Assembly: GCF_963506605.1 (NCBI RefSeq)
Contig: NC_083285.1
Location: 62,000,001 to 62,064,000 of the forward strand
From: Zootoca vivipara
Taxonomy: Eukaryota
Direction of reading: 5' to 3'
DNA: 64,000 bases
Positions 8,237-50,032 of this stretch are shown in pieces. Position 1 is the first letter of the stretch. Each line of letters starts with the position of its first letter. The notes beneath the pieces are model-generated. The model did not search any database. It was given only the letters and a program-made list of their open reading frames with translations, and was not told the DNA's origin. Both the position numbers and the translations under genes were made by a program.

Positions 8237-9009
8237 TTCTAAGGAGATTAGATTATGTAGTTGCAATCTTATTTTCTTTCTGTCAGACCAAGACAGAAAT
8301 ATGTACACACAAGGGTTAGCATCTTGCTCCTTTCCACCCACTTTTGTTGCACCAATGTGTTTACTGTTTGGCATGTGAGATGACCCCCCCTCCCCCTCCA
8401 AGGCACTACCTATACAGTACCTGGTCTGCATTTGCAATAAGTCTTATCAGATATAGTGTGGCAGCACCTGCACTTTGGAACTTTGGAAGCCTGGGGTTGC
8501 CTGTTCAGTGCAGAATGAAAGCAGGCTTTTGCCCTCCTCCAGCTAACGAGCTGTTGGTTATTGCTATTTTCACATTGGGCAGAATTGCCTTGCTCAGCTG
8601 CAAGCTTAGAGCTGTAAAGGAAACTGATTTTGTGCAGTGTTTCAGAGGCTGCATGTGACTTCAGCGAGGGGAGTTGTGGCAAAAACAAACCTTCAGTTGG
8701 CCATCCAATATTTGTCAACCTTTGTGTACATGTATAAATGTGATGTGCTAACTGTAGCAGCTGCCTGACATGGCTGCACTCCAAATCCAGTCTTCTAACT
8801 GGAGCAGGTCAGTGTATGTGTGTGCAAAAAAAGGGGCCAAAAGGCCAAAGAAGATTGGTCTTTCTGTGCTCTAAGTTATGGCAGGTGCTTTTATCGTAAT
8901 GAAACTGTCTTCTTCGAATATGATAGACTTTGTAGCAGTTCTGTTTCAGAATTTAAAGCTATACAGTACAGGTTTTGGAAGTATGTAGCTCCAAAGTGCT
9001 TTAAAAACA

Positions 9010-10535
9010 TCTGGCAGGGGAAAAAACCCAGAATAAAATATAAGATTTTAACAGACAAGAAAGAGAGAGGGGGATTCTCCCTGCCAGACTTGAAACTGTA
9101 TTTTGAAGCTGCAGCTTTGTGTTGGATGAAAGAATGGTTTTTGCTGAACAATACAGATATATTAGACTTGGAAGGATTTGACAATGCTTTTGGTTGGCAT
9201 GCATATATTTGGTATGATAAGTTAAAATTACACAAAGGTTTTAAAAATCATATAATTAGGAAATCATTGTTTAATGTATGGATTAGATATAAAGATCTGT
9301 TAGAAAACAAAACACCCAGGTGGGTTTCACCGTTAGAGGCCAAAGCATTTAAAAGGCGAAATATGGAAACCAAATGGCCAAAATATAAAGACATTTTGAT
9401 ACAAGAAGGAGATCAATGTAAAATGAAAACATATGATCAAATGAAGGAAATACTTACTGATTGGCTTCAGTATCATCAGATAAATGAGGCTTTTAAAAAT
9501 GATAAAAAAATAGGTTTTCAATTGGAAGAATCCAAATTGGAAACGCTGCTATTGAATTCGAGTACAAAAAATCTTTCAAAGATGTATAATTTGCTGCTGG
9601 AGTGGCAAACAAAAGATGAGTTAACGAAATCAACAATGATTGAATGGGCCAAAGATGTTGGACATAATATAATGATGGAGGACTGGGAAAGATTGTGGAA
9701 AAAATCTATTAAATTTACTGCATGTAATGTATTGAAAGAAAATGTTATGAAAATGATGTATAGATGGTATTTAACCCCAGTAAAATTAGCCAAAATGTAT
9801 CATACATATGACAATAAGTGTTGGAAATGTAATGCAGTGGAAGGAACTTTTTATCATATGTGGTGGACTTGCCCCAGGATAAAGGACTTCTGGGAGAAAA
9901 TTTATAATGAACTGAAAAAAGTGTTGAAGAACACTTTTATAAAAAAACCAGAAGCCTTTTTATTGGGACTAGTTGGGAGTGAAATACCGAAAAAAGATAC
10001 CACATTTTTCTTATATGCCACAACAGCAGCAAGAATTTTGATAGCGAAATATTGGAAGCTGAAAGAAATACCGACGGTGGAAGAATGGCAGATGAAGATG
10101 ATGGAATACATGGAATTAGCTGACCTGACCGGGAGACTTCGAGACCAGCGAGAAAAAATGGTGGAAGAAGATTGGAAATGTTTTAAAGACTATTTGAAAA
10201 AGAATAAAATAGACATAGAATAATAAGAAAGGGTTTTGATAGAAACAGGGAGCTGTAGCTTATCAAAATAGATTGGTGTTGAAGGAAAAACGTAATATCT
10301 ATCATGGTTAAGGATGATTATGGTATAAATATATGGAATCAAAAGTTAATGAGGAATATGAAGTAGAAATCGCTAAAAGATTAATATAGGATGATGCGCA
10401 GTAAGGAGGAATTGAGGAAGTCAAATATAATGATTAGAGACGAAATTGTGATTATGAAATTCTTGTTTGTGTGTATTTTGTTTTTATTTGTGTTTAATTA
10501 AAAAAATAAAAAAAATTTTTATAAAAAAAAAAAAA
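9010..10535 (+). mobile_element. Young 5'-truncated L1-clade LINE (ORF2 C-terminal part, 3'UTR, poly(A))
   Basis: About 400 uninterrupted codons: IWQGKKPRI..ERGGFSLPDLKLY.., and a CWKC..HMWWTC zinc knuckle, stop at 10221-10223. A-rich tail. TSD TAAAAACA (9002-9009, 10536-10543) at a TT/AAAA site. Confidence 0.92.
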
Positions 10536-23427: not shown

Positions 23428-26400
23428 GATCCCCTTCATGGATCAATGCCTTGTCGTGGCGAAGGGGCTTGAATAACTCGGAGAAGCTATGAGCTATGCC
23501 ATGCAGGGCCACCCAAGATGGACAGGTCATAGTGGAGAGTTTTGACTAAACGTGATCCACCTGGAGAAGGAACTGGCAAGCCACTCCAGTATCCCTGCCA
23601 AGAAAACTCCATGGACAAAGACAACAGGCATATAAAAGTTATGACGCTGGAAGATGAGCCCCTCAGGTCGGAAGGCGTCCAACATGCTACTGAGGAAGAG
23701 CGGAGGACAAGTACAAGTAGATTCAGAGCTGATGAAGCGGCTGGGCCAAAGCCGAAAGGACGCTCAGTTGCGGATATGCCTGGAAGCGAAAGGAAAGTCC
23801 GATGCTGTAAAGAAAAATATTGCATAGGAACCTGGAATGTAAGAACCATGGATGGAGGTAAGCTGGATGTGGTCAAAAATGAGATGACAAGAATAAATAT
23901 CGACATCCTGGGCATCAGTGAACTAAAATGGAAGGGAATGGGCGAATTCAGTTCGGGTGACTATCATATCTACTACTGTGGGCAAGAATCCTGTAGAAGA
24001 AATGGAGTGGCCCTCATAGTCAACAAAAGAGTGGCAAAAGCTGTATTGGGATGCAATCTCAAAAATGACAGAATGATCTCGATACGAATCCAAGGCAGAC
24101 CTTTTAACATCACAGTAATCCAAGTTTATGCACCAACTACCGGTGCTGAAGAAAGTGAAATTGACCAATTCTATGAAGACCTACAACACCTTCTAGAAAT
24201 GACACCAAAGAAGGATGTTCTTCTCATTACAGGGGATTGGAATGCTAAAGTAGGGAATCAAGAGATAAAAGGAATAACTGGCAAGTTTGGCCTTGGAGTT
24301 CAAAATGAAGCAGGGCAAAGGCTAATAGAGTTCTGTCAAGAGAACAAGCTGGTCATCACAAACACTCTCTTCCAACAACACAAGAGACGACTCTACACAT
24401 GGATATCACCAAATGGGCAGCATCGAAATCAGATTGATTATATTCTCTGCAGCCAAAGATGGAGAAGCTCTATACAGTCAGCAAAAACAAGACCTGGAGC
24501 TGACTGTAACTCAGATCATCAGCTTCTTATAGCAAAATTCCAGCTTAAACTGAAGAAAGTAGGAAAAACCACTGGGCCAGTAAGATATAATCTGAATCAA
24601 ATCCCTTATGAATACACAGTGGAAGTGAGGAACAGGTTTAAGGATTTAGATTTGGTGGACAGAGTGCCTGAAGAACTATGGATGGAGGCTCGTAACATTA
24701 TACAGGAGGCAGCAACGAAAACCATCCCAAGGAAAAGGAAATGCAAGAAAGCAAAATGGCTGTCCAACGAGGCCTTACAAATAGCGGAGGAGAGGAGGCA
24801 AGCAAAATGCAAGGGAGATAGGGAAAGATACAGGAAACTGAATGCAGATTTCCAAAAAACAGCAAGGAGAGACAAGAGGGTCTTCTTAAATGATCAATGC
24901 AAAGAAATAGAGGAAAACAATAGAATGGGGAAAACCAGAGATCTGTTCAAGAAAATTGGAGATATGAAAGGAACATTTCGTACAAAGATTACCATAATCA
25001 AGGACAAAAGTGGTAAGGACCTAACAGAAGCAGAAGACATCAAGAAGAGGTGGCAAGAATACACAGAGGAATTATACCAGAAAGATATGGAGGTCTCGTA
25101 CACCCCAGGTAGTGTGGTTGCTGACCTTGAGCCAGACATCTTGGAGAGTGAAGTCAAATGGGCCTTAGAAAGCACTGCTAATAACAAGGCCAGTGGAAGT
25201 GATGATATTCCAGCTGAACTATTTAAAATTTTAAAAGATGATGCTGTTAAGGTGCTACACCCAATATGCCAGCAAGTTTGGAAAACTCAGCAATGGCCAG
25301 AGGATTGGAGAAGATCAGTCTACATCCCAATTCCAAAGAAGGGCAGTGCCAAAGAATGCTCCAACTACCGCACAATTGCGCTCATTTCACACGCTAGCAA
25401 GGTTATGCTCAAAATTCTACAAGGCAGGCTTAGGCAGTATGTGGACCGAGAACTCCCAGAAGTGCAAGCTGGATTTCGAAAGGGCAGAGGAACCAGAGAC
25501 CAAATAGCAAACATGCGCTGGATTATGGAGAAAGCTAGAGAGTTCCAGAAAAACGTCTACTTCTGCTTCATTGACTATGCAAAAGCCTTTGACTGTGTCG
25601 ACCACAGCAAACTATGGCAAGTTCTTAAAGAAATGGGAGTGCCTGATCACCTCATCTGTCTCCTGAGAAATCTCTATGTGGGACAAGAAGCTACAGTTAG
25701 AACTGGATATGGAACAACTGATTGGTTCAAAATTGGGAAAGGAGTACGACAAGGTTGTATATTGTCTCCCTGCTTATTTAACTTATATGCAGAATTCATC
25801 ATGCGAAAGGCTGGACTAGATGAATCCCAAGCCGGAATTAAGATTGCCGGAAGAAATATCAACAACCTCAGATATGCAGATGACACAACCTTGATGGCAG
25901 AAAGCGAGGAGGAATTAAAGAACCTTTTAATGAGGGTGAAAGAGGAGAGCGCAAAATATGGTCTGAAGCTCAACATCAAAAAAACCAAGATCATGGCCAC
26001 TGGTCCCATCACCTCCTGGCAAATAGAAGGGGAAGAAATGGAGGCAGTGAGAGATTTTACTTTCTTGGGCTCCTTGATCACTGCAGATGGTGACAGCAGT
26101 CACGAAATTAAAAGACGCCTGCTTCTTGGGAGAAAAGCAATGACAAACCTAGACAGCATCTTAAAAAGCAGAGACATCACCTTGCCTACAAAGGTCCGTA
26201 TAGTTAAAGCTATGGTTTTCCCAGTAGTGATGTATGGAAGTGAGAGCTGGACCATAAAGAAGGCTGATCGCCGAAGAATTGATGCTTTTGAATTGTGGTG
26301 CTGGAGGAGACTCTTGAGAGTCCCATGGACTGCAAGAAGATCAAACCTATCCATTCTTAAGGAAATCAGCCCTGAGTGCTCCCTGGAAGGACAGATCGTG

Positions 26401-26653
26401 AAGCTGAGGCTCCAATACTTTGGCCACCTCATGAGAAGAGAAGAATCCTTGGAAAAGACCCTGATGTTGGGAAAGATTGAGGGCACTAGGAGAAGGGGAC
26501 GACAGAGGACAAGATGGTTGGACAGTGTTCTCGAAGCTACGAACATGAGTTTGACCAAACTGCGGGAGGCAGTGCAAGACAGGAGTGCCTGGCGTGCTAT
26601 GGTCCATGGGGTCACGAAGAGTCGGACACGACTAAACGACTAAACAACAACAA
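23428..26653 (+). mobile_element. Full-length BovB (RTE-clade) LINE, about 3.2 kb
   Basis: BovB 5' end (GCCTTGTCGTGGCGAAGGGGCTTG), 3' end GGGGTCACGAAGAGTCGGACACGACTAAACGACTAAAC(AAC)n; TSD CATGGGTGATTTT (23404-23416, 26654-26666). Confidence 0.97.
23611..26643 (+). CDS. Intact BovB ORF: APE endonuclease plus reverse transcriptase (1010 aa from the first ATG; frame open from 23542)
   Basis: EN motifs GTWNVRT, LGISE, VYAPT, GDWNA, IDYIL, SDH; RT motifs QAGFR, FIDYAKAFD, GVRQGCILSP, YADD; no stops or frameshifts. Confidence 0.96.
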   Translation: MDKDNRHIKVMTLEDEPLRSEGVQHATEEERRTSTSRFRADEAAGPKPKGRSVADMPGSERKVRCCKEKYCIGTWNVRTMDGGKLDVVKNEMTRINIDILGISELKWKGMGEFSSGDYHIYYCGQESCRRNGVALIVNKRVAKAVLGCNLKNDRMISIRIQGRPFNITVIQVYAPTTGAEESEIDQFYEDLQHLLEMTPKKDVLLITGDWNAKVGNQEIKGITGKFGLGVQNEAGQRLIEFCQENKLVITNTLFQQHKRRLYTWISPNGQHRNQIDYILCSQRWRSSIQSAKTRPGADCNSDHQLLIAKFQLKLKKVGKTTGPVRYNLNQIPYEYTVEVRNRFKDLDLVDRVPEELWMEARNIIQEAATKTIPRKRKCKKAKWLSNEALQIAEERRQAKCKGDRERYRKLNADFQKTARRDKRVFLNDQCKEIEENNRMGKTRDLFKKIGDMKGTFRTKITIIKDKSGKDLTEAEDIKKRWQEYTEELYQKDMEVSYTPGSVVADLEPDILESEVKWALESTANNKASGSDDIPAELFKILKDDAVKVLHPICQQVWKTQQWPEDWRRSVYIPIPKKGSAKECSNYRTIALISHASKVMLKILQGRLRQYVDRELPEVQAGFRKGRGTRDQIANMRWIMEKAREFQKNVYFCFIDYAKAFDCVDHSKLWQVLKEMGVPDHLICLLRNLYVGQEATVRTGYGTTDWFKIGKGVRQGCILSPCLFNLYAEFIMRKAGLDESQAGIKIAGRNINNLRYADDTTLMAESEEELKNLLMRVKEESAKYGLKLNIKKTKIMATGPITSWQIEGEEMEAVRDFTFLGSLITADGDSSHEIKRRLLLGRKAMTNLDSILKSRDITLPTKVRIVKAMVFPVVMYGSESWTIKKADRRRIDAFELWCWRRLLRVPWTARRSNLSILKEISPECSLEGQIVKLRLQYFGHLMRREESLEKTLMLGKIEGTRRRGRQRTRWLDSVLEATNMSLTKLREAVQDRSAWRAMVHGVTKSRTRLND

Positions 26654-35893: not shown

Positions 35894-36039
35894 CAAAACA
35901 AAAAATAAAAAAATTCCTTCCAGTAGCACCTTAGAGACCAACTAAGTTTGTAACTTAGTTGGTCTCTAAGGTGCTACTGGAAGGAATTTTTTTATTTTTT
36001 GTTTTGACTACATCAGACCAACACTGCTACCTACCTGTA
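35894..36039 (+). mobile_element. Penelope-like element terminal fragment in inverted configuration, inserted in an old L2
   Basis: Perfect 56-bp inverted repeat (35893-35948 / 35952-36007) plus tail; 13-bp TSD ACATTATAGTAAT (35881-35893, 36040-36052); same family as 49797-50032. Confidence 0.8.
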
Positions 36040-37137: not shown

Positions 37138-38096
37138 ACAAGTCTGTATGACAGCTCTTGAAGCAGAGAGTTGTCAACCTGGGTTTCAATAGCCAGTTCT
37201 AGCTGAAAGTTGAAACTGCAGGAAGACTAGCCAGGAAGGAAACCTCTGACCGACAACAGGTCAGTGTGGATCATGTGATACTACAGGATCCCAATAAAAG
37301 CTTTCCATAATAATAAGAGCTCTGCTGGATGACATCAAAGGTTCATCTAGTCCAGCATCCTATTCCCATAGTGGCCAAACAGTTGCTTATGGGGAGACTG
37401 GTAGCAGAAGCTGAGCCCAGCAGAACTTGTCCTTCCCAGCAAATGGTATTCAGAGGCACACTTTATTCAATACTGCTGGTAGCGCACATCCACCAGGGCT
37501 ATTGATAATCTTACTTTCCGTGAATTTGTCTCCGTTTAAAGACACCCAAGTTAGTGGCCGTCACTGCCTCTTGTGGGAGCGAACTCCATAGTTTAACTGT
37601 GTACTCTGTGTGGGAGTACTTTCTTTTGTCTGTCCTGAATCTTCCAACATCCATCTTCATTGAATGACCCTGATTTCTAGCACTGTGAGTGGTGGAGAAA
37701 AACTCCCAGCTTAGGTTTGCTCTCTCGTCTGCAAGGGGCTTTGAATATGTTCTTTCTGATGACTACCTGTGATCTCTTCCCCCTTCAAGATAAAAGAAGC
37801 CAGGAATAGCTGGTGGGATAAGGAAGTAAGCAAAGTGATACTCTCTACTCAGAACCTCTAAAATGAGGCCTTCAGTTGGGTTGCTGGGTAAGCAAGGAAA
37901 AGGGTCGATGAGGGGCTATCTGGGGTGATGAAGAAGAGGTAACTGTGTTGGAGAAATTGGAGGAGTATGTGATCTTTGTGTGGAGGGTAATGGTCTTATT
38001 CAGATCTAATTTCTTTTTTTTAAAATTAATTTTATTGATTTTGCATATTAACAAAGCAAAGAGATAAACACATAAACAAAAAAAATAACATATTTT

Positions 38097-38820
38097 CCTC
38101 CTTCTTCCAACCCCCCCCCCATGAGATCCCTCCTGCCACCAGGTATTCCCATGGACAGTGCGCAGTCGAAGGTGGTGCATCTTATAGTTGGGCTTGTCCC
38201 CACCCCCCTCCTCTCCCCAGAACCCCCCCTGCCACCGAGAGATCCTAGGGATATAAGAAGAGAGGGGGTGGGTGTTCACCCAACTATTTATCTAAACTTG
38301 ATCAAAAATCACCCAAAAAGAGAAGAAAAAAAAACCCACAGGAATAATTAATAAAAAAAAAAGAAGAAGAGGAAAAAAGAACAGCTGCAAAAAAAAAGAA
38401 AAAAAGAAAAAAAAATGAAAAAACAAAAAGGAACAATTATTAATTATTCCTTTCTTTTCTTTTTTTAAAATCATTGTATTATTATGGGCTTCCCCTACCT
38501 CCCCCTTTTTCTGATTTTCATTTTTGACTCCATTTTAGCAGTTTTCTTCTCATATTCCCCATTCTATTTTCCAAACTCTCTAAACTTACTTCAATAGTAT
38601 CCTTATTTCTATTAAATTTATTTTCTGACATCTTTTCCCATTCCCTCCCTCCCCTCCTCCCCCCCAGCACTCCCTCTGCCACCGAGAGCCCCAGAGGAGA
38701 GAAAGGGAGAGGCAATGGTTCTTTTTCCAATTGGGACTTCCCCCCTCCCCGCCCTCCCCACACCAGGAGCCCCCCCTGCCACCAGGAGCTCCCCGCGCGC
38801 AGAGGGCCGACAAGAGGTCC
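38097..38820 (-). ncRNA. Four long RNA hairpins with an invariant GGUGGCAG loop (function unknown, pri-miRNA-like)
   Basis: Hand-folded stems at 38734-38820, 38638-38718, 38184-38287 and 38097-38175; loop motif (TGCCACC on +) at 38777, 38677, 38230 and 38134; many G-U pairs work only on the minus strand. Confidence 0.65.
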
Positions 38821-39112
38821 AGAACCCCCAACCGTCCCTTCAATCATTCATCTTACCAAATTCTCTTTTTTGATACTTCTAAATAACTCCTAAATCTTAT
38901 TTCTAACTTATCAATTTTCCTCCCCCCCCCAGAACTCCCATAATTTTAAAAACCTTTTTACATTCCCAATTCTAGATTTTGTCTTTATCCTCAATTCTTT
39001 CCTCTCTATCCCCTGATCCCGGCTTTCCCCTTCCAGTCCAGCAAGTCCAAAGTCCGTGATCCAGTTTTCAGTCCTTTTTTATCCATCCTATTAAACAACA
39101 AATATTCCTCCT

Positions 39113-39517
39113 TCATCCCACCCCCTTCCTGACCAATTTTTCAATCCAATCTTCTCCGTTCTCTCCCTCCCATAAGTCCCTTCTTCTTTGCTTGATGCTT
39201 TTCTTGTGAGTTTTTTGTCTCTTCAAAAATTCTTGCTTGTTCCCCTCCTGAGGAGGGTTAATTCCACTCTCAGCTAAGTCTTTATTCATTGGCAAGTCCT
39301 GTATTTCATCGTCATTTACTTCAATTATGTTGTAAATCGGTTCATCTGTCTGTTTATCCTCATGCACCATTTCTTGAAGTATTTCATCCTCCTGTAGATC
39401 TTGATCTTGGTTTGTTCCTTCCAATTGTTGTTGAGTCTTATACATATTAATTCTCATTTCCCACAAGAGTTTCAAAACTTTCTCCTGGAAGCCAGGTGTG
39501 TAATTCTCTGTTGGCAT
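39113..39517 (-). CDS. 134-aa ORF of the non-autonomous L1-like element (unknown function)
   Basis: ATG start (AAAAATGC), uninterrupted, A-rich on the sense strand as L1 ORFs are, located where ORF1 would begin; acidic middle and basic C-terminal stretch. No homology established. Confidence 0.5.
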   Translation of the reverse strand: MPTENYTPGFQEKVLKLLWEMRINMYKTQQQLEGTNQDQDLQEDEILQEMVHEDKQTDEPIYNIIEVNDDEIQDLPMNKDLAESGINPPQEGNKQEFLKRQKTHKKSIKQRRRDLWEGENGEDWIEKLVRKGVG

Positions 39518-39979
39518 TTTTCTAGCTTTTCAAGGGCAGAGCAAGACTTGGAAAACAGGAAGTGGTTACAAGTTGCAGTTCTTCCACATAGCCCAAACTG
39601 GATACAATATATTCTCAAATGTCGAACCAAAAGTTTTAAAATGTCAATTCCTTCCTTTCACTCACCCCATTATATTCCACTCGCTGTTCTGTTCGGGGTG
39701 CCGAATTTCAGGGTACAGAGGGGGGTCTCTTCTTCAGCTAAATATGTTTGCAGGGATTCTTATTGTCTATAACAGTTCTCCCCCCTAACCCTGCCTCAGG
39801 AGGAGAGTCTTTAGTCAGTCCTTGGAGATATTCAAACAATAAAGTTTTTAGCCCCCGGCACTGGGGTTCCTTCTTAAGCTGCTTTCCTTTTTAGATCAGT
39901 AAGGGGGAGATCGGCTTCCTTTTTTTAAATCTCACCCCCATTCCAAATCTCAAGTCCAATTTTAAATCTTTGAGTCCTT

Positions 39980-40318
39980 TTTACTCACGGTCTCTCAATT
40001 TCCTGACTTCTTCTTTGGAAAAATCCAGCGCTCTCCGCCTCCGGCACGGAGCTTCTCCCTGCGAGGGTAGCGATGGCGCTCCAAAATGGCCCCCGCGACT
40101 GCGACCCATCTTGCTCCGGAGCTCTTATTAGAGCCTACCGGAGAGTTGGGGAGTCGGGATTGGGGCGCTGCTTGGCTATTTCTGCCCCCAGAACGCGCGA
40201 TCTGGGGTTCTTTGGGGTGCAGCGGCGCTCCCGCTGCTTCCCCCTCCCTCGCAGAGACGGGTCGCCTCGGAGCTCGAGACGGACCCCGCCGGACGGCGCT
40301 GGCGCTGAACCGGAAGCC
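39980..40318 (-). promoter_or_regulatory. CpG-rich internal Pol II promoter / 5'UTR of the L1-like element
   Basis: CpG-dense 300 bp; ETS-type CTTCCGG at the 5' end; YY1-type GGCCATTTTG (about 40082-40091); splice donor ACC|GTGAGT with GT at 39988-39987. Confidence 0.6.
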
Positions 40319-40825
40319 TATTCAGATCTAATTTCTTCCCCAAAGAAAATGTAGCACATTTTTGGGCAAGAAACTACCATGCATATTCCAACAATTTTAT
40401 TTCTTACCTTGTAAAATTAAACAGTAATTCTAATTTAAATTAATGAGTATTGAGTGTGTAATATAAAGAGTAATCATGTCATGATTATGTCACTGGTATG
40501 ATCTTTGCTGTGTCCTTAAGAGCTATGGAAAATAGCGAAAGAGGAACATAGGTGGGTTTACAAGTTCCTAGCTTGTTTTTTATATAAATGTAGAGGGGGG
40601 GGGAGGAGATGGAGAGAGGTGATCTCATAGATGTTTAAATGTGAACTTGGAAACAGGAAATAAGGAGACAAATGTGCACGGCACTGGAGCCAAGTGAGTT
40701 CTTGTTTGATTTACAGTTAACCCATTTATATGCTGGCAGGAATGTGGGCTGGGTCTGTGCTATCAGTTATAACAGCATAGGAAACTTAATTTTATATTCT
40801 GATATTGTCTTGACCACTTTTAAAA

Positions 40826-45572: not shown

Positions 45573-46600
45573 TTATACCCCGCCCTTCCCAGTCAAGACC
45601 GGGCTCAGGACGGCTAACAACAAATAATATCAACACAAGTATAAAAGAAACAATTCAGTTAAAATGCAGATTAATACAATTTTAAAATTCAATTTTAAAA
45701 TTAAAAATCTACAAATAGGATAAAACCATTATGAGATAAAACCTTAGGGGAGGGTAACCGTGGGGTCAGACTGCGTCAGTCCAAAGGCCAAACGAAACAT
45801 CTCTGTCTTGCAGGCCCTACAAAAAGATGACAAATCCCGCAGGGCCCTAGTCTTCTGGGACAGAGCGTTCCACCAGGTCGGGGCCAGTACTGATAAGGCC
45901 CTGGTCCTGGTCGAGGCCAGCCTAACCACCTTGTGATTGTGGACCTCCAGTATGTTATTATTTGTGGACCTTAATGTCCTCTGTGGGTCATACCGGGAGA
46001 GGCAGTCTTGTAGGTACGAGGGTCCTAAGCTGCATAAGGCTTTAAAGGTCAAAACCAGCACCTTAATCCTGATCCTGTACTCCACCGGGAGCCAGTGCAG
46101 TTGGTAAAGCACTGGGTGAATGTGATCCCGCGGCCGGGACCCCGTAAGGAGCCTCGCATTCTGCACCCGCTGGAGTTTCTGGGTCAGTTTCAAGGGCAGC
46201 CCCGCGTAGAGCGAGTTACAATAATCAAGCCTAGAGGTGACCACCGCATGGATCACTGTGGCCAGATCAGGTTGAGAAAGGTAGGGGACCAACTGCTTAA
46301 GGCGGTGAAGATGGAAAAATGCCACCTTGGCTGTGGTTGCAACCTGTGCCTCCATGGAAAGGGAGCCATCCAAGGTTACACCCAAGCTCTTGACAGAAGG
46401 GGCTGACACTAATTGAGCCCCAGCAAAAGATGGAAGTTGCCCCCCCCCCCGCCCCATGTCATCCTGCCCCAGCCAGAGGACCTCTGTCTTCGAAGGATTT
46501 AGCTTCAGCCGACTTCCACGTAGCCATCTAGCCACAGCTTCCAAGCACTTGGTCAGTGTGTCTGGGGCCGAGGCAGGACGGCCATCCATCAACAGATAAA
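45530..46600 (-). mobile_element. 5'-truncated L2 LINE with about 285 open ORF2 codons and (TTA)n tail
   Basis: LKLNPSKTEVL, SVKSLGVTLD, TSRLDYCNSL, LHWLPV, APTWWNAL (ORF 45744-46640); (AAT)n at 45530-45572. Confidence 0.92.
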
Positions 46601-47289
46601 AAACACTGCTTTTGCATAAACTTTTAATACTTGACTTCAAGGTCTAGATCTGGCACTTTGAAAACTGATTAATACCAAATTTGAAAACATGTAAATCATT
46701 TTCATATGTTAGAATGGAATTCTTCCCTCCTCCCAACTTCTCTTAATACATACTTTAATTTCTGTCAATTTCTTGTTGCTTTTAATAAGTCTCATGCGAG
46801 GCTGGATTAGCATAAAATTAAACTGTCAAAGTGGCTTGCAAGAAAGCTAGCTTACGTTGATTATTACCAAAAGTAAGGAGGATTATTTCATGTCTCTGAG
46901 TGTGTGATTTTGTGTGTGATAAATGTAGCAAGTTATCAAACGCTATGGGGCATGGCAGATTTTATTACTGTTCTACATGCCGTAGGGAAAAGAAAGCAGA
47001 ATCTTGTTACAAATCTTTCGCTTAAAACAACAATACACTCCTACGAATGGAAGGACTGCATATTCTAAATATTTTTTTACCCCAGATTTTTAAATTAGAC
47101 TTGTAAAACATGAGTATTTTGGGTTTGCTTTGTTGTGATTCTGGTCAGGTCTTTTCCTTCGTGTATGCCTTAGGGTGGGATGATTTTAAATCATCCAGAA
47201 AAGTTACTCATTTAAGTAGTTTCCCAATGTGCAATCTGTGTTTTTTGCAAACATGTATACGACTTAGTTGTACCTCACCAAAGACTCCT

Positions 47290-49796: not shown

Positions 49797-50032
49797 TAAA
49801 AAAATTCCTTCAGTAGCACCTTAAAGACCAACTAAGTTTATATTTTGGTATGAGCTTTCGTGTGCATGCACACTTCTTCAGATACCTGAAGAAGTATCAG
49901 GTATCTGAAGAAGTGTGCATGCACACGAAAGCTCATACCAAAATATAAACTTAGTTGGTCTTTAAGGTGCTACTGAAGGAATTTTTTTATTTTGCTTCGA
50001 CTCAGACCAACACGGCTACCTACCTGTAACTG
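49797..50032 (+). mobile_element. Penelope-like element pLTR fragment as a perfect 94-bp inverted repeat
   Basis: Arms 49796-49889 and 49897-49990 are exact reverse complements; 13-bp TSD ACACTTGATAAGA (49784-49796, 50033-50045); contains the hammerhead motif. Confidence 0.88.
49901..49938 (+). ncRNA. Minimal type I hammerhead ribozyme (mirror copy on the minus strand at 49848-49885)
   Basis: GTAT-CTGAAGA-A-GTGTGCATGCACAC-GAAA-GC-TC^ATAC: stem I GTAT/ATAC, CUGANGA and GAAA core, palindromic stem II, vestigial stem III, as known for Penelope-like elements. Confidence 0.8.

Follow-up and report, generated by a model that had tools for sequence, protein, structure and literature searches.

An array of four RNA hairpins sharing one tip sequence within the 3' half of an L1-derived retroposon of Zootoca vivipara

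A retroposon with L1-like ends

We analyzed a 64,000-nt stretch of Zootoca vivipara DNA (NC_083285.1, 62,000,001-62,064,000; hereafter the window), in which a retroposon known here from one copy (the carrier) bears a cassette of four long hairpins capped by the same 8-nt tip. We are highly confident of the identity of this cassette: four sense-strand RNA stem-loops, arranged as two diverged two-hairpin modules, within the 3' half of a 2.3-kb retroposon that is young, has no reverse transcriptase (RT) and has an L1-type 5' terminus, a CpG island and an AATAAA signal with an A-tail; its insertion took place by L1-type target-primed reverse transcription and left a 19-bp target-site duplication (TSD). 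The carrier and the features described within it lie on the minus strand, and coordinates are those of the window.

The carrier insert spans 38016-40318 (2,303 bp, one third of the length of an L1) and is bracketed by a perfect 19/19 direct repeat, the 5' copy of which in element orientation (AAGAAATTAGATCTGAATA) occupies 40319-40337 and the 3' copy 37997-38015. The 19-bp length of the TSD falls in the range of roughly 7-20 bp of L1-mobilised elements. The insertion point on the bottom strand, TTTCTT/CC, is T-rich and differs from the canonical L1 endonuclease site, TTTT/AA. Directly after the TSD, the first bases of the carrier (40300-40318) read GGCTTCCGGTT, giving the GGCTTCCGG terminus. 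Nine of 11 positions of this start agree with the Anolis clade-1 L1 consensus GACTTCCGGTG, a 5' extremity that the families of this clade share and that is followed by CpG islands (Boissinot and Sookdeo, PMC5381506); zebrafish L1s begin GGACTTCCGGTT (PMC5381506). At the other end, an AATAAA polyadenylation signal (38031-38036), read directly, stands nine bases before the A-run, and the A-tail itself (38016-38021) is short, with 6 A, or 8 when the first two TSD bases are included. Vertebrate L1s all end with AATAAA and poly(A) (PMC5381506).

The first 319 bp of the carrier (40000-40318) form a CpG-island head with a GC content of 0.65 and a CpG observed/expected ratio of 0.95, compared with 0.19-0.31 elsewhere in the carrier and in both flanks. 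This head may represent a promoter of L1 type or a first exon that was captured. It contains a 44-codon ATG open reading frame (ORF), a YY1-like CAAGATGGG lies about 190 nt inside the carrier from its 5' start, and the head ends in the splice-donor-like GAGACC/GTGAGT (39985-39995).

The sole sizeable sense ORF (39113-39517, 134 aa) starts 801 nt from the 5' end. Compared with Pfam, it gave nothing significant (the best match had E 0.1 and 13 bits, below the cutoff of 27 bits); it had no match in a 5.8-billion word search, in a phmmer search of 1.84 billion representatives or in the PDB, and its exact sequence is absent from a 15-billion collection. It may be a truncated, lineage-specific coiled-coil remnant. 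We rejected a HAL1-type (ORF1-only) identity, since neither Transposase_22, the Pfam family of L1 ORF1p with its coiled coil, RRM and CTD, nor any phmmer (1.84 billion) or PDB match was found for this ORF. Among the sense ORFs searched with Pfam, none encodes an RT or an endonuclease, and blastn found no second copy of the carrier in the window.

Since the carrier starts and ends like an L1, has an L1-type TSD and encodes neither RT nor endonuclease, we conclude from its sequence that it is a non-autonomous, 5'-intact retroposon derived from L1, and probably a young one because its TSD is perfect and its CpG island undecayed. The carrier resembles HAL1, SVA and processed retrocopies in having no RT, a poly(A) end and a long TSD, and like them it depends on mobilisation in trans. 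A promoter-like 5' head of its own and G-rich repeats in its interior, comparable to the variable-number tandem repeat (VNTR) of SVA, are further likenesses to non-autonomous L1-dependent retroposons. However, HAL1 retains a recognisable ORF1, to which the carrier ORF has no detectable homology, and SVA, a hominid element, is assembled from Alu, VNTR and SINE-R parts that the carrier does not contain. A preliminary description of this DNA had assigned the hairpins to a retroelement, as the TSD, the AATAAA signal, the A-tail and the L1-like start now bear out; it had also placed them in a 5' untranslated region (UTR), which has to be abandoned for this copy. The cassette lies downstream of the only ORF and ends 61 nt before AATAAA, and it is therefore in the 3' UTR in this copy. 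The hairpins are located 75-800 nt from the 3' end of the carrier, spread over 740 nt.

Four hairpins on the sense strand

The window contains six copies of the 8-mer GGTGGCAG, four of which lie on the minus strand inside 650 bp (38133-38140, 38229-38236, 38676-38683 and 38776-38783). Their start-to-start gaps of 100, 447 and 96 nt reproduce the two pairs, spaced by 100 and 96 nt, that had been reported before. The other two copies (55340 on the plus strand and 60284 on the minus strand) are embedded in unrelated sequence and cap no hairpin. In the literature, the 8-mer was found only in primers and unrelated sequences, and a metagenome scan with the apex pattern returned one unrelated contig, a chance match. 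In all four units of the carrier, the arrangement is the same: a pyrimidine-rich arm pairs with the next G-rich arm over a constant apex, YY-GGUGGCAG-RRGGR.

The hairpins were folded with ViennaRNA over the four intervals of the preliminary description (H1, 38734-38820; H2, 38638-38718; H3, 38184-38287; H4, 38097-38175), with 300 shuffles each. In the arm-preserving shuffles each arm was permuted separately with the loop fixed in place, and dinucleotide shuffles served as a second control. On the minus strand, the minimum free energy (MFE) was -59.0 kcal/mol for H1 (z -5.5 against dinucleotide and -5.2 against arm-preserving shuffles), -54.6 kcal/mol for H2 (z -5.1 and -4.0) and -69.8 kcal/mol for H3 (z -7.2 and -7.6), and for each of these three hairpins 0/300 shuffles were as good. 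H4 was the weakest, in keeping with the more mismatched mid-stem described for it, with -32.7 kcal/mol, z -3.0 and -2.7, and 2/300 shuffles as good. The comparison with shuffles that preserve the block structure had been set beforehand as the one that could overturn the fold, and every hairpin exceeded it. Shuffled arms by themselves fold to about -41 kcal/mol, and the real arms are more stable than their arm-preserving shuffles by 8-28 kcal/mol. The plus-strand z values were much weaker (H1 -2.6, H2 -2.6, H3 -3.2, H4 -0.7), in agreement with the proposal that the fold belongs to the element's own strand.

These folds differ in length and regularity as follows. H1 is longer than described before: its hairpin stands, and its boundaries do not, as a basal GGUUGGG/CCCAAUU helix resembling the basal helix of H3 prolongs it to 38722-38836 (about 38726-38834), with 42 pairs, a loop at 38775-38783 and -73.8 kcal/mol in the extended form. 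H2 (38638-38718) has 33 pairs on 35-nt arms, a 9-nt loop and single-stranded, A-rich flanks, and its MFE structure makes up 29% of the ensemble. H3 (38184-38287) has 40 pairs and an 8-nt loop, and its MFE structure makes up 46% of the ensemble; its 15 contiguous apical pairs, G.U among them, and its basal 10-bp Watson-Crick helix match the details given for it previously. H4 (38097-38175), with 26 pairs, is the most decayed of the four. The stems of H1 and H3 contain internal loops. When the entire 1.1-kb region from the ORF stop to the poly(A) site was folded, the four separate stem-loops persisted, with GGUGGCAG(G/A) at their tips. These results confirm the existence of four hairpins sharing one tip and show that they form specifically on the RNA strand of the element. 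As a separate observation, all five 1x1 mismatches of the H1 stem are G.G, 2-7 pairs apart, and both 1x1 mismatches of the H2 stem are likewise G.G.

The G-richness of the 3' arms and the apex raises a different possibility, in which the G-rich 3' arm or apex would be the functional part as a G-quadruplex (G4) and the pyrimidine arm would compete with it, giving a hairpin/G4 switch analogous to the mammalian L1 polypurine tract. Three-tier G4 motifs are present, as motif matches only, in the 3' arms of H1, H2 and H3 (38740-38759, 38637-38674 and 38198-38229). Moreover, the invariant loop with its next four bases (38129-38140, 38225-38236 and 38772-38783) fits GG-N-GG-NN-GG-N-GG, so that the apex GGUGGCAGG(G/A)GG of H1, H3 and H4 could form a two-tier G4; H2 is not capped in this way. 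When G4 energies were included, ViennaRNA put quadruplexes at the apexes of H1, H3 and H4, gaining 4.5-6.8 kcal/mol at the tip, and in H1 also in the 3' arm. A G-rich polypurine tract is conserved in the mammalian L1 3' UTR and in two anole L1 families (PMC5381506). However, most stem pairs were kept under these energies, the long stems remained the predicted ground state and H2 gained nothing; two-tier G4s are weak and the G4 parameters rough. A G4 also leaves the specific complementarity of the 5' arms unexplained, and we consider such a switch very unlikely to be what the cassette is for.

We also searched for a kissing or pseudoknot partner of the loop and rejected the idea, as no 8-mer of the element pairs with the loop except a U/G-only wobble match. 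We also considered further likenesses, on which we make no claim: a CTCF half-site (CCACCAGG, which H1 and H4 have on their plus strand), the tRNA A-box, the Jeffreys minisatellite core or Chi-like GGTGG(G)CAGG and the FUS GGUG motif.

Kinship of the hairpins and signs of maintained pairing

The stretch containing H1 and H2 (38850-38590) is colinear with that containing H3 and H4 (38300-38040), with an alignment score of 56 compared with 11 +/- 6 (maximum 35) for block shuffles. Since this colinearity exceeds the controls, the four hairpins are, as read from their sequences, diverged paralogues forming two two-hairpin modules. The earlier statement that the cassette is not a simple tandem duplication is thus half right: the units are duplicates, and they have diverged. 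A 26-nt apical core (Y-Y-GGTGGCAG-R-R-GGR with flanks) is 65-85% identical across the four units, and the arms are only 50-78% identical. The kinship of the arms is reticulate, with the 5' arms most similar in H2/H3 (z 4.1) and H1/H4 (z 2.8) and the 3' arms most similar in H1/H3 (z 3.4).

More broadly, the 3' half of the carrier is a repeat array of G-rich, pyrimidine-rich and T-rich tracts. At least six G-rich units of this region are related to one another, and two among them have no 5' arm or apex. One of these solo units, with a 'GGAGGAAtATtTGTT' tail (39093-39125), stands directly after the ORF stop and is 85% identical over 33 nt to 38083-38115, its paralogue at the end of H4. The other (38919-38939) is like the H3 3' arm (86% to 38207-38227), has neither a 5' arm nor a GGTGGCAG apex, and has a tail (38896-38919) that resembles 38602-38625. 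Between the two hairpin pairs lies an A-rich/T-rich inverted repeat with a long T-rich tract (38326-38465), the 29-nt arms of which are 83% complementary. In addition, an internal ATTTTAAAAAAAGAAAA (38455-38471) resembles the 3' end of the carrier together with the first TSD bases (38010-38026). It is placed 445-446 nt upstream of the carrier 3' end, which equals the H3-to-H2 spacing, and it may be a trace of a 3'-end tandem duplication or of an older, shorter element end.

Such an array could be a neutral by-product. According to this explanation, a minisatellite-like G-rich and pyrimidine-rich array grew by duplication, and the hairpins arose and were refreshed by template switching (fold-back copying) or by simple compositional complementarity, serving neither the element nor the host. 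The additional G-rich units, the two among them that have no 5' arm or apex, and the reticulate kinship of the arms are in keeping with it, as is the stability that shuffled arms already reach. Lizard L1 3' UTRs always have repeated poly-pyrimidine or T-rich regions, and some have G-rich tracts (PMC5381506); hairpins have been reported to originate and persist through template switching in the absence of selection (PMC8794818, PMC10710096), and this mechanism offers a one-step origin of complementary arms together with apparent compensatory change. However, template switching predicts strand-symmetric Watson-Crick arms and gives no reason for the loop to be invariant, in contrast to the strand-specific pairing of the cassette, and the excess stability of the real arms over arm-preserving shuffles, the invariance of the apex above diverged arms and the ratio of G.U to A.C described below all speak against it. 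We regard a purely neutral origin as somewhat unlikely and still as a weighty rival.

The invariance of the apex was examined in a four-way alignment anchored on the loop itself, a circumstance that qualifies both the apex invariance and the co-variation reported here. The 8-nt loop is the only long invariant run in this alignment, in which 19 of 86 ungapped columns are invariant (permutation P about 1e-4 for a run of at least 8), and conservation among the four hairpins drops with distance from the loop. An invariant apex above variable stems had been described before, and this observation holds. Co-variation was measured on the RNAalifold consensus helix of 29 pairs in the four paralogues only. 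There, 83.6% of the cells are paired, compared with 75.2 +/- 1.9% when partners were shuffled among the paralogues (0/500), and sliding the partner by 1-3 columns lowered the value to 60-72%. Pairs changed on both sides numbered 13, against 5-8 in the slid controls.

The four MFE structures contain 141 pairs, of which 31 (22%) are G.U, and their symmetric-loop positions include 2 A.C and 9 G.G. The ratio of G.U to A.C of 31:2 (binomial p = 1.3e-7) departs from the equal numbers of both that a DNA palindrome should give if it decays symmetrically on its two strands. Correspondingly, a covariance model built from the four hairpins scored them at 77-87 bits on the minus strand and at 10-11 bits on the plus strand. 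In a scan of the window, this model found only the four; the next hits, at 22.9 and 18 bits, are perfect DNA palindromes. These two palindromes (49844-49942 and 35908-35992) are all Watson-Crick and have equal covariance scores on both strands.

The excess of G.U might alternatively be a fossil of ADAR hyper-editing, in which the stems would have been edited from A to I before reverse transcription, converting A-U to G.U and A.C to G-C and enriching G. The 31 G.U pairs against 2 A.C and the G-rich arms on the sense strand only are what such editing would produce. However, G-richness is also found outside the stems. The neighbor signature of ADAR is missing as well, because ADAR disfavors a 5' G, yet the fraction with a 5' G neighbor is 0.65 for the G in G.U and 0.67 for the G in G-C. 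We judge this origin to be extremely unlikely.

Taken together, the hairpins appear to be maintained by the element's RNA, and several points weigh against this reading. First, purines and especially G prevail on the sense strand throughout the 3' half (plus-strand GC skew -0.3 to -0.6), also in the parts outside the hairpins, so that the G.U excess could reflect a compositional or mutational bias of the entire element and not selection for pairing. Second, the co-variation counts are fragile, as they come from four paralogues with low-complexity arms in a loop-anchored alignment. Third, H4 is decaying, and all of the evidence comes from a single genomic copy. Fourth, no partner protein or known motif was identified for the apex. 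At last, L1-type retroposition is thought to require only a poly(A) tail.

Possible roles and related systems

Long stems with a GUG loop invite comparison with primary microRNA (pri-miRNA) transcripts, and the preliminary description had proposed Microprocessor-type stems and a mobile small-RNA cassette with variable guide arms. According to this alternative, Microprocessor and/or Dicer would cut the hairpins, either into element-borne RNAs like microRNAs (miRNAs) or small interfering RNAs, or as host restriction of the retroposon RNA. Microprocessor has been reported to bind and cleave structured retrotransposon RNAs, and the L1, Alu and SVA hairpins it binds, like pri-miRNAs, share with the cassette long imperfect stems, G.U pairs, a GUG loop and a location in a retrotransposon transcript (PMC4203495). 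In favor of the proposal are the apical GUG, present in all four loops as part of the constant loop, and a stem of about 35 bp in H2 only, where the 35-nt arms, 33 pairs and single-stranded A-rich flanks suit such a substrate; in addition, the sub-threshold Rfam matches are nearly all miRNA precursor models. The other observations speak against it. Rfam gave zero matches at the gathering threshold over the whole window (best sub-threshold 24.5 bits against 70), and the best miRNA models reached 17-25 bits against gathering thresholds of 63-230. Most auxiliary motifs are missing: none of the four hairpins has the basal UG, and one of the four (H3) has a CNNC at 5-10 nt beyond its basal junction. 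The loops are just 8-9 nt, H1 and H3 are interrupted by internal loops over their 40-42 pairs, and H4 is poorly paired (26 pairs); the canonical Microprocessor stem has 35 +/- 1 bp. Furthermore, the loop is the most conserved part and the arms the least, whereas miRNA genes show the opposite pattern. Sequence complexity is low in the G-rich 3p arms, and the antisense matches of the arms that had been envisaged were, within the window, just 14-17-nt low-complexity matches. Processing into small RNAs is therefore improbable, and the guide-arm proposal found no positive support.

Stem-loops near the 3' end of non-LTR elements provide a further parallel. In the stringent class of long and short interspersed elements (LINEs and SINEs) and in a conserved stem-loop of the human L1 and Alu 3' UTR, proposed as a handle for the LINE RT, the loop is recognised and the stem is free to vary (PMC5135761), a pattern that the cassette would share. 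Those structures are single, have 8-10-bp stems, 5-7-nt loops and a bulge, and stand at the very 3' end. In contrast, the cassette consists of four hairpins of 26-42 pairs over 740 nt, in a carrier that ends in poly(A). A stringent-type 3' stem-loop was accordingly considered and rejected: the carrier ends with AATAAA and an A-run and has no tandem-repeat tail, its hairpins are long, and it shares no sequence with the only LINE of the window.

Another related system is the set of tracts in vertebrate L1 3' UTRs, which occupy the same position as the cassette, upstream of AATAAA and poly(A), and have in common with it G-rich and C/T-rich sequence, a long T-rich region and internal repetition (PMC5381506). 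Poly-pyrimidine or T-rich repeats are characteristic of lizard and frog L1 3' UTRs, and G-rich tracts are found mostly in mammals and in two anole families; the function of these tracts is likewise unknown (PMC5381506). The cassette is unlike them in its four discrete long hairpins, invariant 8-nt apex and duplicated module, an arrangement undescribed in that work (PMC5381506). We regard the hairpin array as a variant of these purine/pyrimidine tracts and of the 3' stem-loops of non-LTR (long terminal repeat) retroposons, not as a demonstrated new class.

As to function, our preference, which is tentative and falls short of an even chance, is that the array is a cis-acting RNA structure of the retroposon that is recognised at its apexes. 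The gradient of conservation, with an invariant tip, decay along the stem and co-variation, is as in protein-binding stem-loops and suggests recognition of the apex. The array would have been kept in the master lineage as a structure of the retroposon RNA, and the repeated apexes could be docking sites for an RNA-binding protein, LINE-encoded or from the host. Also or instead, the array might form a stable scaffold in the 3' UTR, with which an RNA that encodes no RT could better compete for the L1 machinery. In either case, pairing is all that the stems would require. With G-rich 3' arms, changes between C and U in the 5' arms would be tolerated as G.U, and this tolerance would explain the variable 5' arms beneath the constant tip. 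The analysis shows the hairpins, their strand specificity and paralogy, the invariance of the apex and the anatomy of the carrier, and selection, binding by a protein and any role in mobilisation are what we infer; the proposal of sites for a loop-recognising protein agrees with the invariant apex, the falloff of conservation and the co-varying stems.

A stronger version of this idea is quite unlikely. It holds that the array with its fixed tip, possibly a two-tier G4 cap, is a handle for capturing the L1 ribonucleoprotein or a host RNA-binding protein, or else a genuine mobile small-RNA locus of several hairpins, with arms that diversify while the scaffold for processing stays constant. If true, either of these would be an undescribed class of cis-element of poly(A)-type non-LTR retroposons.

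The selection of foreign RNAs by L1-type RTs is still an open question. The poly(A) tail is the only signal accepted for 'relaxed' LINEs, yet some RNAs without an RT, such as those of Alu, SVA and HAL1-like elements, succeed as parasites far better than ordinary mRNAs do. A 5'-intact, young L1 derivative that has no RT would be a natural candidate for a cis-element of mobilisation or stability outside mammals, and a duplicated, strand-specific array with an invariant tip is tractable by deletion and loop mutation. If the array is neutral, it would be a clean example of LINE 3' UTR tracts yielding miRNA-like hairpins, which would be relevant to miRNA annotation in squamate genomes.

Several other features were observed in the window. 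An ORF of 1,033 aa at 23542-26643 on the plus strand has endonuclease and RT domains, is the only RT in the window and appears to be an intact LINE ORF2. Its C-terminal motif is one we take to be BovB/RTE-like, and blastn found no sequence common to this LINE and the carrier. Two further ORFs, of 467 aa (8820-10223, plus strand) and 298 aa (45744-46640, minus strand), have non-ATG starts and match no Pfam family. The first of the two palindromes mentioned above (49844-49942) is perfect, 46 bp long and Watson-Crick throughout (-86.5 kcal/mol, z -19.5), and it has no Rfam match at the gathering threshold. Each of its arms holds CUGAAGA...CGAAA, resembling the head-to-head minimal hammerhead cores of Penelope-like elements. 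The second (35908-35992), likewise perfect, has 41 bp, a loop of 3 nt (-68.8 kcal/mol, z -16.7) and A6/T6 at its flanks, and looks like a fold-back insertion or one similar to a miniature inverted-repeat transposable element.

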